A model generated the notes under the pieces. That model was not told the DNA's origin. It ran no database searches and was given only the letters and a program-made list of their open reading frames with translations. This document shows, piece after piece, positions 319 through 12,671 of a stretch of DNA of 64,000 nt. Source of the stretch: Guillardia theta CCMP2712 (lineage: Eukaryota > Protista > Cryptophyta); assembly GCF_000315625.1 (NCBI RefSeq), contig NW_005434471.1, positions 8,669 through 72,668 on the forward strand. The letters are read 5' to 3'. Position numbers and translations under genes: made by a program. The first letter of the stretch is position 1. Every line of letters begins with the position of its first letter.

Positions 319-3241
319 CTAGAAGATATGAGGATCGACTGGCTGACTTCTATGCGTTTTCGTCAGAATGATGCTTGTCTGCCAAAAAATAATCAGAAAA
401 CACGCATAAATCAAGCAGAAATTACCTGCTTCGTGTAACTCTGCCGGCAGATCGTCTGTGAACGACACGATTAGCACACAAAAATCAGAACATGTCTTGC
501 AAAAATTGACCTGAAGACACGACCCTGAAGGAATGTAAGCAATAACGCAGACGAATTCCAAAAACATAGTTACCCTTCTGTTTCAGTAGAGGCAGCATGA
601 CGATTTTCTTCATCCCCATTCTTTTCATGATGTTCATGTTTTGAATCTTCTGCGTCTTCAGCTTTATCCTCCTGATTTTTCTCGCTTGTCCCTCGAATGG
701 CCTCTTCTGCTCGTCGACGCGCCTCGGCAATCTGTGATGGATTTTAGCAAAGTAACTCCAAGCTACAACTACCTCCTCCTCAGCTTTCTGCCTTGCAAGA
801 GCCGCCGCCTCCTCCTGCTTCTTTCTCATCTCCTCCTCCTGAAAGAATAGATCAGATTGAAACCAGAACCTTCGACTTATAATTCAACCTCAGCTTGACG
901 CTTAGCAAGCAGTCTTGCAGCCTGGAAATAGCGAGAATAAGAAGGGAAGACTGCATTCAGTCTGACCTCTCGCTCGGCCTCCTCTTCGATCTCGATCAAG
1001 TCCTGAAGTGGCCGCGTAATGCTGTGAACATCCATCCTCTGCATAGCGTTCAGAACACAATCCAGGTTGCTGCGACAGGCTTACTTCTAGCTGCTCTCGG
1101 ATGCCAAAGAGATACTGCACGCAGTTAAGGATGAAAGGAACGAGAGTGCCACTCATGGTCTTGATCTTCATCCAAGGTCAACGATCTGCGCAGCGGAAGA
1201 TACAACACAATCTATGATACCAGGTCGACCATGTGTTTGCGATCCCCCTTGGACAAAGAAGACTCAATCTCAGCAAAGTTCGCTGCTGTCTGTTCTGCAC
1301 AGCAGCAAAGAACTTCAACTATCATGCCTGTTGCCCTGGTACCACGAGAAACCAATGGTCAGAACCAAAGTTGTTTGACATTCAGAACAAGAAACCTCTG
1401 CCTGCATGTTATCATTGCACATTCTCGAAGCTCATTCAAAGAGTCCATCAGCTGTCAAACAGCAAAGTCAAAGTAAACAAAAGTATTGATCCAAACCTTG
1501 TTGCAAAGAAGTGCCAAAGGAATAAAATTCAAGAAGATTGACGGCGGACTCATAACTCCTGTTGCATTCTCTTCGTAGCTAACCAGATTGGGTCAATCCA
1601 CAGATGGCCGTGACACTGAATAAGGTGAATTACCGAGTCTTGACAGCCTCAGGCATTGAGTTGAGCTTTTGTGCAGCCAAGGATTGTTCATATGCGTCTC
1701 GTGCTGTGATCCATCTATCAGTCCTTGCATACAGGATCTTGCAAACGATATACCGTTCGAAAGAGAGAGCTGTATAATCTCAAGCATTCTCATCTCAAAG
1801 ATTTCACCAACTGCAAAAGCATCAATGGACAAGAACAGGTGCAGAATGATGCAACAAGGCTTTGATACCTGCCGATCTAAAATCAAGTCCTTCCCTACCC
1901 AAATACGCGCCACAGTACATCACCTATTTAAAAACGTGTCAAGTTGTTTATCAACATGCATTCTTATGCTCACCTTGTCCAGCAGACTCGATATCTGACT
2001 GCACTCTTTGATTCGCGGTAGGCCCTTGTAGCTAACGATCAGGGAAAGATTACATTGTATAGCACAACCTGATTGAGGACTGAAATGAAGTTTGTGATCC
2101 TCCTGCTCGCCCATGCATAGAGAAGCCCTCCATCTGCTGATCCTTCCATCTCCTGATCAAAATAAAAGTATCCCTTGTTACTTGAAGGCTATTGAGATTG
2201 AAGCAGAGAACTCGCCTGGGATGAGGAGAAATCCAAGAAAATAGCTCGATATTGTGTGACGATCTCAAAGATATGAACCCTTACCAAGTCTTTTGACCCA
2301 TGAAAGTCGTCAGACATCCAAAAAGCAGCCATCAGTATCTCTACCTGTAATTTTGCTAAGTGATTGATAAACTGGTCCAGACTTCTCAGCTTCGTCAAAT
2401 GCTGACTGTAAGACTTATCAAACATTCAAGCAGCTTTTGAGATGTTTTCAAGACCTGAAGCCACAAGTCTCTACATTCCAAGAAAATAAAGCGAAGATCT
2501 TCTTCGCTGTGCCTACCAAGTCGTCGGAGGACACCAATCACATGCAGGCAGACTGGCAGTTGGATATGACTCTGAGATTTGACGTCATAAGCTCAAACGA
2601 TTCATTCAGACACTCTGCACCTGAAGTTTTTGCAGGAGTTGATAGAGCATGTTGTTCTCACTGCGTTCGACGGCTTGAAATAGAGATTCAATTAGGGTAT
2701 TCTCTTGATGCCGCGCTCGCAAGCGTCGGGCAAAGGCTGCCAGTTCAAGCGCTTCCTCATAATACTCATTTCTCACAGCCGTATCCATGAGCTGCGGAAC
2801 TTCCAGTACTTCAAGGAGCTGAGCATGCATCTTCCAGGTTGTTTGGGTCTGTTTTCGCAGCAAATCCACCGCCTTCGCATGTTCCTCTACTTCCTCGCAA
2901 GCTCGCTGCAGCGATGGGACATCAGCCGCCAACTCATGGAGCAGTCGCCCACTTAGTTCCAGCTCCTCCCTTACACTCCGAACGCAGACTGCTGACTGAA
3001 GAAAAGCACTGTAATTACTTACTGCGTGTGTTTCAGTGTCCTTCTTGACCGCATGGCACTCGTTTGCCAGCCGTTCTGGTTCTGCAGCCACTCTATCTAG
3101 ACCGAGAGAGAGTAGTGACAGCAGAAATCGCTCTTGCTCGTCTCTCGAGATCCAGCCTTTCCCTGATCCTCCTCCTCCCCCCGACGATGCGTCCCACGAC
3201 CCATCCAGCATGTCCATCAGCTGTGCCGTTCCGTCCGCCAT
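319..3241 (-). CDS. COG8: Conserved oligomeric Golgi complex subunit 8 (Dor1-like), multi-exon; 3' end approximate
   Basis: Exons give LLEVLEVPQLMDTAVRNEYYEEALELAAFARRL, IQLPVCLHVIGVLRRL...LRFIFLECRDLWL and HIFEIVTQYRAIF, all hallmark COG8 segments. Acidic coiled-coil tail. Confidence 0.9.
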
Positions 3242-6740: not shown

Positions 6741-7139
6741 TCATTTGAAAAAGGAGAGATTCAACGATGGCAGTTTTATCCTGTAAGAGTTGCTTTTGGC
6801 TACGTAACCCATCCCTTCTTCTGAGCGCTGGTAGTAATTGAAATAATAGTAAATATCCTTCTTGGCACAGCAGGTAAAAACAGTGTTCGAATTAGACAAG
6901 CATCGTTGCATCTTCAGTCCCACTTCGTCGTAAAGGCTTTGTTTCTTGACTCTCTTCGGATCCAGAAGACTTCCAGAGCCAGATCGTTTCAATGGAACTT
7001 TCCTTGAACCCCTCATGCTCCATGAGAACAATGAGTCAGGATTGCTGATTTGATTGTTATCCCTTTCCGACTCGTCTTTGGGGCTTTCAGCTGGCGAGGA
7101 GGTTCGTGATCTAGATTTGAAGCTGATCAATCGTGTCAT
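6741..7139 (-). CDS. Intronless 132 aa Ser/Lys-rich hypothetical protein
   Basis: Clean ATG-to-stop ORF (AGCATGA context) followed by an AT-rich 3' region. No recognisable domain. Confidence 0.5.
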   Translation of the reverse strand: MTRLISFKSRSRTSSPAESPKDESERDNNQISNPDSLFSWSMRGSRKVPLKRSGSGSLLDPKRVKKQSLYDEVGLKMQRCLSNSNTVFTCCAKKDIYYYFNYYQRSEEGMGYVAKSNSYRIKLPSLNLSFFK

Positions 7140-7439
7140 GCTTGAGCTAGATGAAAGTGGTCAATGTTTCTTCGATGAATGGATCTTCTGCTGTTGCCCG
7201 CGCACAATTGTTCCGCTCCTGTTTTGCGGTCGTCTCGCCCTTCTTCTTTACCCCGGGAGACTTCTAGTACCACCCGCTTTCCGATGGCCACCCTACCCCC
7301 CAGAGATGCTTTGCCTGGATGAGCATGAAGAAGCTGTGGTGGAAGAGGAGAAAAGTATCGAATAAGAGACTAAGATAAAACACCAAGGTTTCATGTCTAC
7401 CATATTCGTACAAAGCCAGTGAATTTTCAAAACATGTAA

Positions 7440-8886: not shown

Positions 8887-9038
8887 TGTCCATGCCGGAT
8901 CATTCTCTTGTGTCTTTTATCTTCCCTTGATTGATCGCACAAAGTTCTTTAAAAAAAAAATTCAAAAAAAATAAAAGTCATCCGTTACAGTCATGATGAT
9001 GTTTTTGACTGATGTTTTTTAGAGAGAGTCTCGGTGAC

Positions 9039-10403
9039 ATGCTCCCGAGGCGGCGGCCCACAGCGGGGGCCTCAAGACCAGGATGGGGAGAGAGTGGAAG
9101 ACGAAAAGGTGGATCGACAGGCTCTTTGAGTCCACAGGAGAGAAGAATGAAGGCACCGGATGAGGACAGAGAAAGCAGCTTCTCAGATAGAAAATATGGC
9201 GATGAACAGTTGAGACCCTCTTCACCGTACAACGAAGATGAAGACATGAGACTATCGTCGTTCAAGTCCCTCAGACCTTTCTCAAACTTCTTGGATGGAC
9301 AGATGAGTGATAGGTACATCCCTAATGGAATTGAAAGAGATACAAAGCAACCTCTGCTGGCAGGCAGCTCCCGCTTCAAGGAGCTGGACGAACTCTTGAT
9401 GCACAAGGATCGTGAGCTAGAGGCGAAGGACCAGAAGATTCGTAGCCTGCAAGCAGAGATCAGAGAGTACAAAGAAGAGATTCGAGCTCTTGAGCAGCAG
9501 AAAGGATCGTATCCTCGTTTCATGGACCTTCCTTCCAACATTCGCCCTGAAGATGTAGAGGATGCATTCCGGCTACGGGCGACAGCTGAGCAAGCAGCAT
9601 CTGAGGGAGCCGACATGTTGGAAAAGGCGCTTGAGAGTGAGTGAGATGAGTGTAGGTATGAACTTTCTAAGCCTGCTCCCATCAGAATTGACGATTGAAA
9701 AGTCGCGACGGCGAGAAGCAGAGGCGAGGTAGTGAGATATCGTGATGTTCGACTTGAAAGAGAGTTTCCATTGATTCAGGTTGATGAGCATGAGTGAGAG
9801 TCCCCAAGCTTCTGAGCTGCGAGCATCATACGAGCGGCTGTCGATGGAAAACAGATTTTTGAAGGAGAAGAACGACGAGCTGATGGCCCGGTCGATGAAG
9901 GCAGAGGAAGCGAACAAGTAAGCTCTTGCGTGCAAGATGAAGGTCTCTATGTCACTGAGCCATAGGAGCTCCGCCTCGACAAGTGACGAGATGTCGTCAA
10001 GCTTGGTTGACCTGCAGTGGGCGAGACGAGAGGTGTCAGAGCTAAGAGGCGTCGGGCAAGTTTTACAGCTCCAGGTATGACAACTGGGATGGAGTGAAGA
10101 CAATCAGCTGATTCTCTTCCACAGCTGGAAGAGCTCAGGTCGGCCCTGTCTGAGCAGTGCAACCACACACAGAACGCGAGACTTGAAGTCGCAAGGCTGC
10201 AGGCAGAAAACGAAATTCTCAGGAAGGAGCAAATTTCTCGGAGCATCAACTCCTTCCTTACCGTCACTCCGCATCGGACTCCTCTTTCCGCCGCTTCACA
10301 TGCGGATAGATCGTTAGAGACCAGGTCTCCTCTGAGGACCTTCTCTCCGATGGCACAAGTCGGCATCAACCGAACACGCTCAGCGATGGGCTCATTTTCA
10401 TAG
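9039..10403 (+). CDS. Multi-exon coiled-coil protein of unknown function
   Basis: ELDELLMHKDRELEAKDQKIRSLQAEIREYKEEIRALEQQ and further heptad-rich exons separated by short introns; stop TAG at 10401-10403. Confidence 0.7.
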
Positions 10404-10460
10404 ATTTCTGATTCTTTCATTTCATTACATGGATGTTAATTTTTCTTTGTTCATCTTGTT

Positions 10461-12671
10461 CTAATCTGTTATTCTCAGTGTTATTCTTGGTGTGTTAGCA
10501 ACCTTAGGTGCTTCAAGGTCTGTAGGGTCGGCATAAGCGTCGACGAACATCCAATGGACGAGGGAGCGCATGAGAGCGAAGATGGGCCATCGCTTTGCGA
10601 CAGCAGATCGAGCCTTGTTCTGTCTCTCCTTGTACATGACTCTGCTTTCAGCCGTCGACAGCTCCTGCTCCAGGTGGAACACTTCGAGCGGCTTGATTAC
10701 AATCATGATCGGAACTCCCCACCATCTGACCATCACCACGAGGCCCCGCCAGCCGTTGGCTCGCTCCTCATCTCGCTCCAAGGGAGCTTTCCTCACGGAT
10801 TCCATCGCATAGTCAAGATGGTCCTGCACCTCCAAGATCTCCAATCGTTCCGTGCACTCCCCTTGTTCTCGACCGAGGAAGGGGATGTCGGCATCATGAA
10901 GCACGGCAGGCGTGAATCTCGTTGCTCGTAAGCGGTCAAGCAGTTTTCTCCCCTGGTTCGCACTCTCAACAACAATCCGAACCGACAGGATGTTCCTGAT
11001 GTACTGCGAGTCGCTGTACCTCCCACGCGTTGTCGACGACCCTATGAAGGCGTCGAGGTTGCAAAGCTTGTCGGCCACCATGTCAAAAACTTCGTCGTCG
11101 CTCTTTTTGTATCCCGAGAATCTCAGGATTCCTCCCGATCGATCGACATCAAGGGAAGTGAGGGCTTCGTACATCACCGAGTGCGATATCAGCTTGGGCT
11201 TCTGCCAGTCGTCGGAGTGAACAAACTCCTTCTGCTTCAGCCCAACACGCTCCAAAAATGCTGAACGACCGTGAAGAGCGCGATTGAGCGATTGCATAGG
11301 CAGCACCTGCATAGATGACAGCAGGGTAGAGCCGAGCTCCTGACCCGGCATGAGCGCCCATAGTGTCTCGTCAGGCAGTGGCTCCATGATGGTAAATCTT
11401 TCCCTGCGCTGCGCTCTTCTCGTTTCACCTGTCACCACTGAGCTCCTGCTAAACTTTGAATCTCCATAGATGGTCCTTGCAAGCACTTCACAGAAGCGCA
11501 TCAGACGCGTTTCTCCTCGCACCATCGCACGACGGAAACCTTGTCGCACCTCAATGAGTTCCTGTCAAACTGTCAGCATCTTCAACACAACTTACTGCAT
11601 AACAATGCTCACGTGTTTTGAAAACTCAATACTGTGAGCTTGGAAGGGCAATTGCATTAGAAGTTTTCGCTTTTGCTCTAATCGCAACAAGATCTTTTCG
11701 ATCGAAGGCTCCAGATCTTGAGTAAACATCTTGAGAGCAGAACCATCTTGTCTCTCCCCGTAATGGACCCACTCTAAAAGCTCGTCCTCGTCGTTGCTCG
11801 AGCTTTCTCGCCTTCCTTGCAGCATCTTGTGTAACTCAGTCTCGAGTCCACCGTTACATCCGCCCACGGGAAAGATACAAGGGATGCGAAAGAACTCCTC
11901 CTTGTCGACCGCTGCAGCATCATGAGATGCAGCAGCCGAGACCTTCACTTTGCCGCACAGCAGTCTGTTCTTGCACCTCCGTATCGAGATTAGCGTCCCT
12001 TGAACTAGCATCCCGTCCTCCCTCTGACCATAAACGATCTGACCCGGACGGAAACGAATCGATGGATGGTTACGAAGCAGATTGACCTCTTCCAGCTTGT
12101 CACGAAACCACCTTGCCTGCTTGGCCATGGTCTCTCTTGTTCCAGGATGGCTATAAGCCTCTTGTCTCAGAGTTCCCTTGAACCTCTCTACCCGCAATTC
12201 TCCTTCCTGGCGAATCTTTCCGTCGCTCAGCGACCCCTCCCTGAACTTTGTACCAGAGACTGAGGAGCAAACAGACCCAGCAGCAGATTGACGTTTCTCT
12301 TGCACCTTTGACTGCCGACCAAACCCCTTTCTATGAGCGATCAGCCCAGAGACTTCCATCTCCTCGTTCGGTTGCTGTACATCACTGAGCTCCACATATT
12401 TGCATGCGCATCTCAGCCCCCCAAGGATTTTTTGCCGTTGTTTTCTCTGCAAACTATCTGATTGCTTGTGGTATGTGAGAGAGCACAGCTTCTCTCGTGT
12501 TTCCCCTGCCTGCTTCCCCAGCCTCGCCCCCCACGCCGTGTATGGACGTCGTGTGGCGCCCCCCAGAACAGGAGGGGCAGGACGAAAGGCTTGTGAGCAT
12601 TTGGAGAGGCAGAGGCACAGCAACAAGATCCATTTAAAAACATTGCTAGCGTCCCTCTTGATGCATCCCAT
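10461..12671 (-). CDS. Plastid-targeted protein with degenerate RelA/SpoT synthetase-like domain (2 exons, intron near 11.57-11.61 kb)
   Basis: Signal peptide ending CSQA-F then a Pro/Arg-rich transit-like segment. C-terminal motifs IRNILSVRIVVE, VQDHL, ANGWRGLVVMV, PIMIVIKP, ESRVMYKE occur in RelA SYNTH order. Confidence 0.7.

Follow-up and report, generated by a model that had tools for sequence, protein, structure and literature searches.

Can a protein that carries the motifs of an alarmone synthetase in their proper order, with most of the residues that define them replaced, still be a synthetase, and if not, what would keep it in the genome? The question is raised by a gene of the cryptophyte Guillardia theta CCMP2712, located on the minus strand at positions 10461 to 12671 of a 64,000-nucleotide (nt) stretch of contig NW_005434471.1, here called the window. 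A first-pass annotation had described this locus as a plastid-targeted RelA/SpoT-like pseudo-synthetase, and had offered two explanations for it, namely a catalytically dead fold acting as a nucleotide sensor or regulator, or a divergent family of bacterial derivation with new chemistry. The computational analysis reported here indicates that the gene probably encodes a conserved, plastid-directed pseudo-synthetase with the fold of the RelA/SpoT homologues (RSH).

Gene structure and fold of the C-terminal half

The gene was recognized from two same-frame minus-strand open reading frames (ORFs) at 11592-12671 (359 amino acids, aa) and 10461-11549 (362 aa). They are parts of one gene (12671..10461) made of two exons and a 51-nt GT..AG intron in phase 0, the predicted product of which is 719 aa long. 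The basis of this splice model is the canonical splice sites together with orthologue collinearity, the spliced junction FSKH/ELIEV being equal in length to that of the orthologues, which cross it without a gap. Full-length relatives crossing the junction are P0002 (777 aa), P0061 (708 aa; Proteomonas sulcata, transcriptome MMETSP1049), P0005, P0006, P0022, P0034, and P0043. Residues of the exon-2 domain are numbered below as in the second ORF (add 357 for the spliced protein), and the family and homology searches were run with each exon separately rather than with the joined 719-aa protein.

Exon 2 retrieved nothing meaningful from Pfam, NCBIfam or, by phmmer, from PDB sequences (neither exon hits Pfam even at an E-value of 1), and a word-indexed protein search returned the self-match only. 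An exhaustive phmmer search of 1.84 billion representative sequences yielded 56 relatives of exon 2. These comprise cryptophyte proteins at 40-49% identity, including the P. sulcata transcriptome sequence, and bacterial-type proteins of 350-400 aa at 24-34% identity (E 2.6e-25 to 1e-5). The latter align over the whole of exon 2, their phmmer matches at E 2.6e-25 to 1e-12 covering query residues ~109-345 and the alignment extending to the N-terminal helix. Thirteen of 29 aligned family members match PF04607 (RelA_SpoT) at 15-27 bits, the gathering threshold of this family being 27 bits; the G. theta protein itself is not assigned to PF04607 by score, and a whole-genome PF04607 scan misses the locus. 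A family-mixed profile searched against PDB sequences gave marginal matches to RelP and RelQ (E 0.017-0.19), which served to establish the motif register and not as standalone evidence.

The AlphaFold2 (AF2) model of exon 2, computed with the family alignment as input, reached a predicted local distance difference test score (pLDDT) of 83.7 and a predicted template modelling score (pTM) of 0.84. In a Foldseek search with this model the first 47 PDB rows were all alarmone synthetases (SAS1/RelQ, SAS2/RelP, CapRel, SpoT, Rel, RelA, and FaRel2), with marginal E-values starting from 1.6e-3. VIA-align placed Bacillus subtilis SAS1 (5ded) first, with a Z score of 11.5 and a root-mean-square deviation (rmsd) of 3.4 Å over 148 residues; rows 1-28 of this comparison were all RSH synthetases (Z 6.8-11.5), the first other folds (RsfS and GLD-2) appearing at Z 6.0. 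The top row of an ESM-Atlas shape search was the ywaC cluster (template modelling score 0.62), in which 100% of members carry PF04607, and a language-model feature search scored 0.94 to RelA_SpoT-bearing clusters. Taken together, transitive homology, the AF2 model with its Foldseek, VIA and Atlas matches, and an hhalign alignment to RelA (see below) support the assignment of exon 2 to the RelA/SpoT synthetase fold, in agreement with the nucleotidyltransferase fold that had been proposed for it.

Active-site residues, parent family and selection

The five motifs quoted in the first-pass annotation are present at residues 184-195, 241-245, 264-274, 280-287, and 301-308. Alignment of the family profile to residues 200-400 of Escherichia coli RelA (NC_000913) by hhalign brought all five into register (probability 78%, E 1.8e-5), and hidden Markov model alignments to RelP (6fgk) and RelQ (2be3) gave the same register. 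The motif pairing is thereby identical to the one originally drawn, and the E. coli RelA strings quoted for it proved correct when checked against NC_000913. The substitutions listed at the time (D to N, E to M, Q to V, H to V, and H to R) are equally real, the canonical residue being lost in 6/6 cryptophyte orthologues. Nine motif positions (R, K, D, G, K, K, E, Q, and H) were tabulated across 20 bacterial-type members, six cryptophyte orthologues and three members of a second degenerate clade. At each of these positions the canonical residue is found in 19-20 of the 20 bacterial-type members, and eight of the nine are replaced in the six cryptophyte orthologues, the Lys of motif 1 being the exception (Table 1). 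Residues retained besides K149 are R191, D243, G266, W267, S302, and K307, and W267 is conserved family-wide where canonical RSH have the acceptor-stacking Tyr, that is, an aromatic but different residue. The protein thus lacks what distinguishes active synthetases, namely the Mg2+-coordinating Asp and both the Glu and the Gln of the E-I-Q-I-R strand. In FaRel2, exchange of the same Asp, which is a Mg2+ ligand (D90G), abolishes activity (10.1101/2021.04.30.441581), and the synthetase of plant RSH1 is considered to have been inactivated by a Gly-to-Ser change (PMC5633626). In view of these two precedents and of the motif residues lost, the domain is, judging from its sequence, almost certainly unable to transfer pyrophosphate.

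The bacterial-type relatives belong to an unnamed and widespread family of RSH-like proteins (350-400 aa), confirmed at at least 114 loci (one genome per species) in Acidobacteriota, Myxococcota, Bdellovibrionota, Chloroflexota, Vulcanimicrobiota, Melainabacteria, Bacteroidota/Ignavibacteriota, and others. It is to this group that exon 2 owes its true parentage, the homology (24-30% identity) running along its full length with an insertion and the C-terminal tail included; the bacterial proteins differ from the G. theta protein in keeping the nine motif residues and in having neither a presequence nor an N-terminal barrel. That the protein stems from a divergent, bacterial-derived family, as the first-pass annotation had considered, is borne out by the bacterial family scan and by the tree. 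Compared with canonical RSH, the parent family carries an invariant Trp for the acceptor-stacking Tyr, a Lys for the motif-3 His, and a Gln for the Arg of E-I-Q-I-R, and because of these replacements its product may be something other than guanosine tetraphosphate (ppGpp). On the contig of one bacterial member (P0009), an ORF of 92 aa (7104-7382) overlaps the stop codon of the family member by 4 nt in a toxin-antitoxin-like arrangement, which is absent in the other two bacterial contexts.

Evidence on selection comes from a Logan contig (SRR23967302; 1792 nt) which is ~98% identical to window positions 10404-12196 and covers part of exon 1, the intron and exon 2. Since it retains the 51-nt intron, with one substitution, this contig is genomic or unspliced, and it implies that public reads include a further Guillardia strain or species, closely related to the present one. 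Exon 1 differs from it by 10 synonymous and 0 non-synonymous changes and exon 2 by 16 and 3, respectively, giving 26 synonymous versus 3 non-synonymous differences overall and a ratio of non-synonymous to synonymous divergence (pN/pS) of ~0.04. The gene is under strong purifying selection and is conserved across cryptophyte genera. On the count of 26 versus 3 differences, a pseudogene reading was rejected. The active-site substitutions being shared across genera, the loss of the canonical residues is old and the protein has been retained ever after. A stem of 3.78 substitutions per site leads to the degenerate clade in the tree, which fits a burst of change after catalysis was lost, followed by renewed constraint.

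Several alternatives have to be weighed against a conserved pseudo-synthetase. The loss of the catalytic motifs and the very long branch are what a decaying or non-functional copy, its motifs merely eroded, would also show; the frame is nevertheless open across both exons, pN/pS against the close relative is ~0.04, full-length orthologues occur in other cryptophytes (a transcriptome sequence among them), and the same substitutions are found clade-wide, which points to an ancient loss after which the gene was kept, and decay can be given a negligible probability. It is also very improbable that the structural likeness is that of the generic polymerase-beta-type nucleotidyltransferase fold and not of RelA/SpoT specifically. 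The marginal Foldseek E-value (1.6e-3) and the presence of GLD-2, TdT, OAS1, MenT1, and RsfS at Z 5-6 would be compatible with such a generic likeness, but the VIA rows are RSH throughout from 1 to 28 before dropping to Z 6.0, the relatives match PF04607 and no other nucleotidyltransferase family, and the five RSH motifs align in order with those of RelP, RelQ, and E. coli RelA. The protein may, alternatively, still be an enzyme, with a remodelled cleft (invariant N186, D156, and W267, and a clade-specific SSxxRG loop) performing another, possibly metal-independent chemistry on nucleotides or RNA ends. N186, D156, and W267 are each found in 6/6 members of the clade, selection is strongly purifying, and the RSH fold is known to vary in substrate, as in ppApp synthesis and tRNA CCA pyrophosphorylation. 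This new chemistry is nonetheless quite unlikely, given that the two-carboxylate metal site has lost both of its acidic residues, that R147, K242, K271, and H303 have disappeared with them, that loss of the Asp alone abolishes activity in FaRel2, and that the other replacements vary among orthologues (M/S, V/L, Y/S/H, and V/T/A), unlike a new catalytic set.

The preferred reading, that of a conserved, plastid-directed pseudo-synthetase, also has points against it or against parts of it. The family assignment is founded on transitive homology and predicted structure, with no Pfam hit of the protein itself; the domain is called dead relative to an uncharacterised parent family which itself departs from canonical RSH; and the invariance of N186 in the clade may point to an active site that was altered and not lost. 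Among three bacterial members, whose neighbours include a FemAB-like gene, a Ser/Thr kinase, and ApbE, there was neither a conserved neighbourhood nor a functional hint. In addition, the idea of a nucleotide sensor is weakened by the loss of four of the basic residues that would be expected to bind a triphosphate. As this loss argues against tight triphosphate binding, the residue pattern suggests that a role involving a protein partner or an RNA end ranks above that of a classical nucleotide sensor.

Presequence and N-terminal half

The protein begins with a predicted signal peptide, in which a basic n-region is followed by a hydrophobic core (residues ~10-22; Kyte-Doolittle maximum at 10-23) and a c-region ending in S-Q-A, after which residue 29 is Phe. 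The 60 residues following this junction contain 13 Lys and Arg against 3 Asp and Glu, and in the AF2 model of exon 1 the chain is disordered from the end of helix 9-24 up to residue ~175. The junction, Ala or Gly followed by Phe, recurs in five orthologues (P0002, P0006, P0022, P0043, and P0061), and a signal peptide followed by Phe is also present in two paralogues on contig C95 (G/F and A/F, respectively), the corresponding junction of P0014, an orthologue of a further paralogue, being G/Tyr. The presequence has the bipartite build of cryptophyte nucleus-encoded stroma proteins, a signal peptide and then a transit peptide with an aromatic start, and the SQA-F junction singled out in the first-pass annotation was thus confirmed. 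In red-lineage complex plastids, stromal proteins are distinguished by an aromatic residue at the first position of the transit peptide (the ASAFAP-type motif). With Phe in this position, the protein is most likely targeted to the plastid stroma, as predicted from its presequence.

A different destination, with the domain assignment left as it is, would be the endoplasmic reticulum (ER) and secretory pathway, or a stop in the periplastidial compartment. Such an outcome is unlikely: localisation is admittedly predicted from the sequence alone, and a disordered stretch as long as residues 29-175 is not typical of a simple transit peptide, but six orthologues and three paralogues share the signal peptide with its aromatic junction, the 60 residues after it are basic and contain few acidic ones, and an aromatic residue at +1 marks stromal proteins under the ASAFAP-type rule.

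Between the presequence and the synthetase-like domain, the Pfam scan detected no domain in exon 1, HD included. The AF2 model of exon 1 is poor overall (pLDDT 52), residues ~176-290 alone reaching 70-87; this stretch folds into a helix and then a five-stranded barrel, of which residues ~205-270 are the usable part of the model. In an exhaustive VIA search this barrel matched PWWP, Tudor, chromo, and KOW barrels at Z 5-6.9, values which are weak and at the level of a common arrangement. The model thus hints weakly at a Tudor/SH3-like barrel, and the identity of a Tudor or PWWP domain is not claimed. No all-alpha HD hydrolase domain is visible in the exon-1 model, which consists of disorder and this small barrel, and no TGS or ACT region was found in the protein; together with the Pfam scan, this upholds the earlier remark that no HD hydrolase motif is present. 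The protein thus lacks the N-terminal HD and the C-terminal TGS/ACT or EF-hand regions of long RSH, and ends ~25 residues past the SYNTH-like domain. Coordinates of all features are collected in Table 1.

Table 1. Features of the G. theta gene and of its C95 paralogues. Coordinates are those of the window unless stated otherwise; residues of the motifs follow the second ORF.
Feature	Coordinates	Strand	Description	Residues in the six cryptophyte orthologues
Exon 1	11613..12671	-	353 codons, ATG 12671..12669; donor CAC/GTGAGC; orthologues share start Met and signal peptide	
Intron	11562..11612	-	51 nt, phase 0 on both sides; acceptor GACAG/GAA; in-frame TAA and TGA	
Exon 2	10461..11561	-	366 codons (11561..10464) and stop TAG 10463..10461; divergent RelA/SpoT-type synthetase-fold domain	
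Signal peptide, residues 1-28	12588..12671	-	predicted cleavage after S-Q-A; small residues at -3/-1; AF2 helix 9-24	
Transit-peptide-like region from Phe, residues 29 to ~88 (end approximate)	12408..12587	-	composition; disorder in AF2 model	
Helix and small Tudor/SH3-like beta-barrel, residues ~176-290	11802..12146	-	AF2 model; GGCNGG loop invariant in alignment	
Motif 1 equivalent (RxK...N)	11076..11114	-	R replaced by Y147; K149 kept; N replaced by D156	R position: Y/S/H; K position: K in 5, R in 1
Motif 2 equivalent (DxxG-x-[KR]-I-V strand)	10965..11000	-	Mg-binding Asp replaced by N186; Gly replaced by S189	D position: N 6/6 (bacterial-type D 20/20); G position: S/Q/V
Motif 3a equivalent (KDY)	10815..10829	-	K replaced by Q242; D243 kept; Y replaced by H244	K position: Q/H
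Motif 3b equivalent (G-[YW]-x-x-x-[HK])	10728..10760	-	G266 and W267 kept; K/H replaced by V271	K position (canonical His): V/T/A
Motif 4 equivalent (E-I-Q-I-[RQ])	10689..10712	-	E replaced by M282; Q replaced by V284; Q/R replaced by K286	E position: M/S (bacterial-type E 20/20); Q position: V/L (bacterial-type Q 19/20)
Motif 5 equivalent (S-H-x-x-[FY]-K)	10626..10649	-	S302 and K307 kept; H replaced by R303	H position: R/Y
C95 paralogue (local coordinates)	1474-2832	-	differently degenerate active site	
C95 paralogue (local coordinates)	409-1752	+	differently degenerate active site	

Paralogues, known systems and proposed role

Three further members of the family are encoded by G. theta, one on contig C7 and two on contig C95. 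The C7 paralogue (C7:87742-90942, minus strand, multi-exon) has intact motifs (SRIKAEEEIWNKV, KDVFGLKIVV, EVKDYL, SGWRALKSVV, IEIQIQ, and ESHSEFK), and P0014, with its signal peptide followed by Tyr, is its close orthologue; the C7 protein may be an active enzyme located in the plastid or the periplastid space. The C95 pair (~248-254 kb) consists of two divergently oriented, intronless genes 5 kb apart, encoding proteins of 452 and 447 aa which are 70% identical. Their active sites are degenerate in another way (D to N, G to H, E to A, with Q kept), and together with P0045 they form the second long-branch clade. The two degenerate clades group in the tree with a Shimodaira-Hasegawa-like approximate likelihood ratio test (SH-aLRT) support of 94, a grouping which joins long branches and is possibly an artefact. 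On this tree the degenerate clades may, but need not, descend from the intact cryptophyte copy; a cyanobacterial or plastid origin finds no support in it, and it points to no particular donor. Canonical PF04607 genes are present on G. theta contigs C47 and C24, as found by the whole-genome scan. Weak PF04607 matches (21 bits) were also noted at C1:836179-836475, C1:842629-842925, and C214:10682-10954, inside long frames (1019 and 695 aa).

The closest structural counterparts are the small alarmone synthetases RelQ/SAS1 and RelP/SAS2 (5ded, 6fgk, and 6ewz; PF04607), with which the protein shares the core fold (Z 10.4-11.5, rmsd ~3 Å over ~150 residues), the order of the five motifs, and the absence of HD, TGS, and ACT domains. 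It differs from them in having no Pfam match, in the replacement of the Mg-binding Asp, the Glu and Gln of E-I-Q and several basic residues, in a ~90-residue insertion after the first helix (a beta-hairpin and helices, exon-2 residues 30-118), and in being a eukaryotic, nucleus-encoded protein with an additional presequence and N-terminal barrel. Dead domains are familiar inside long RSH enzymes, as exemplified by the pseudo-HD of RelA. The latter and the synthetase of plant RSH1 are precedents for the retention of a domain after catalysis was lost, and the Gly-to-Ser change of RSH1 (PMC5633626) parallels the S189 which replaces the motif-2 Gly here. In those enzymes the dead domain adjoins an active one in the same polypeptide and the loss concerns one residue, whereas here the dead synthetase fold is the sole enzyme-like domain and the loss spans the whole active site. 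The toxic small alarmone synthetases (toxSAS; FaRel2 and CapRel) and Tas1 are divergent members of the fold (Z 6.9-8.0 to the present model) and show that the RSH cleft can take ATP or a tRNA 3' end instead of GDP/GTP; they are active toxins with Asp and Tyr intact, whereas the G. theta protein has neither the Asp nor a toxin-antitoxin context. The literature searched contained nothing on a free-standing, catalytically dead alarmone-synthetase fold or on a stand-alone pseudo-alarmone-synthetase regulator. Measured against that literature, what would be new here is the stand-alone occurrence of a dead synthetase fold, dead domains within long RSH being already known.

Conserved proteins built on folds incapable of catalysis usually act by binding. 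As catalysis appears lost, yet purifying selection is strong and the protein is conserved across genera, it would be a pseudoenzyme acting by binding and not by catalysis, and most likely serves the plastid as a regulator or adaptor without catalytic activity. The nuclear-encoded 719-aa protein would enter the ER by means of its signal peptide and would then be passed to the stroma of the four-membrane plastid. Its C-terminal 366 residues keep the synthetase alpha/beta fold and descend from the bacterial family with intact motifs. The old cleft (W267, K149, R191, D243, S302, and K307) would hold either a ligand, such as a nucleotide or an RNA 3' end, or a protein partner, for which the intact-motif C7 paralogue and a canonical RSH are candidates, and the Tudor/SH3-like barrel would serve as a second interaction surface. 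Any one particular partner or ligand is a doubtful proposition.

Plastid (p)ppGpp signalling is known from the long RSH enzymes of plants, green algae, and diatoms, and the literature searched held nothing on RSH-like proteins or (p)ppGpp signalling in cryptophytes. It is conceivable, if rather speculative, that cryptophyte plastids possess a nucleotide-signalling module of non-cyanobacterial bacterial origin, in which an active C7 enzyme is accompanied by dead paralogues (the present gene and the C95 pair) as receptors of its product or as inhibitory or adaptor subunits. What the gene shows is that the RSH superfamily has another, unannotated branch, widespread among bacteria of soil and fresh water, which entered cryptophytes and gave rise there to one paralogue with intact motifs and at least three degenerate ones predicted to be plastid-directed, selection having kept them all. 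A pair of active and dead paralogues would provide a handle both on the product of the parent family and on the control of organellar nucleotide second messengers by pseudoenzymes.

Directly downstream of the 3' end of the gene, long overlapping ORFs occur on both strands at window positions 8978-10420, among them a plus-strand ORF of 210 aa at 9012-9644, which is rich in charged residues.

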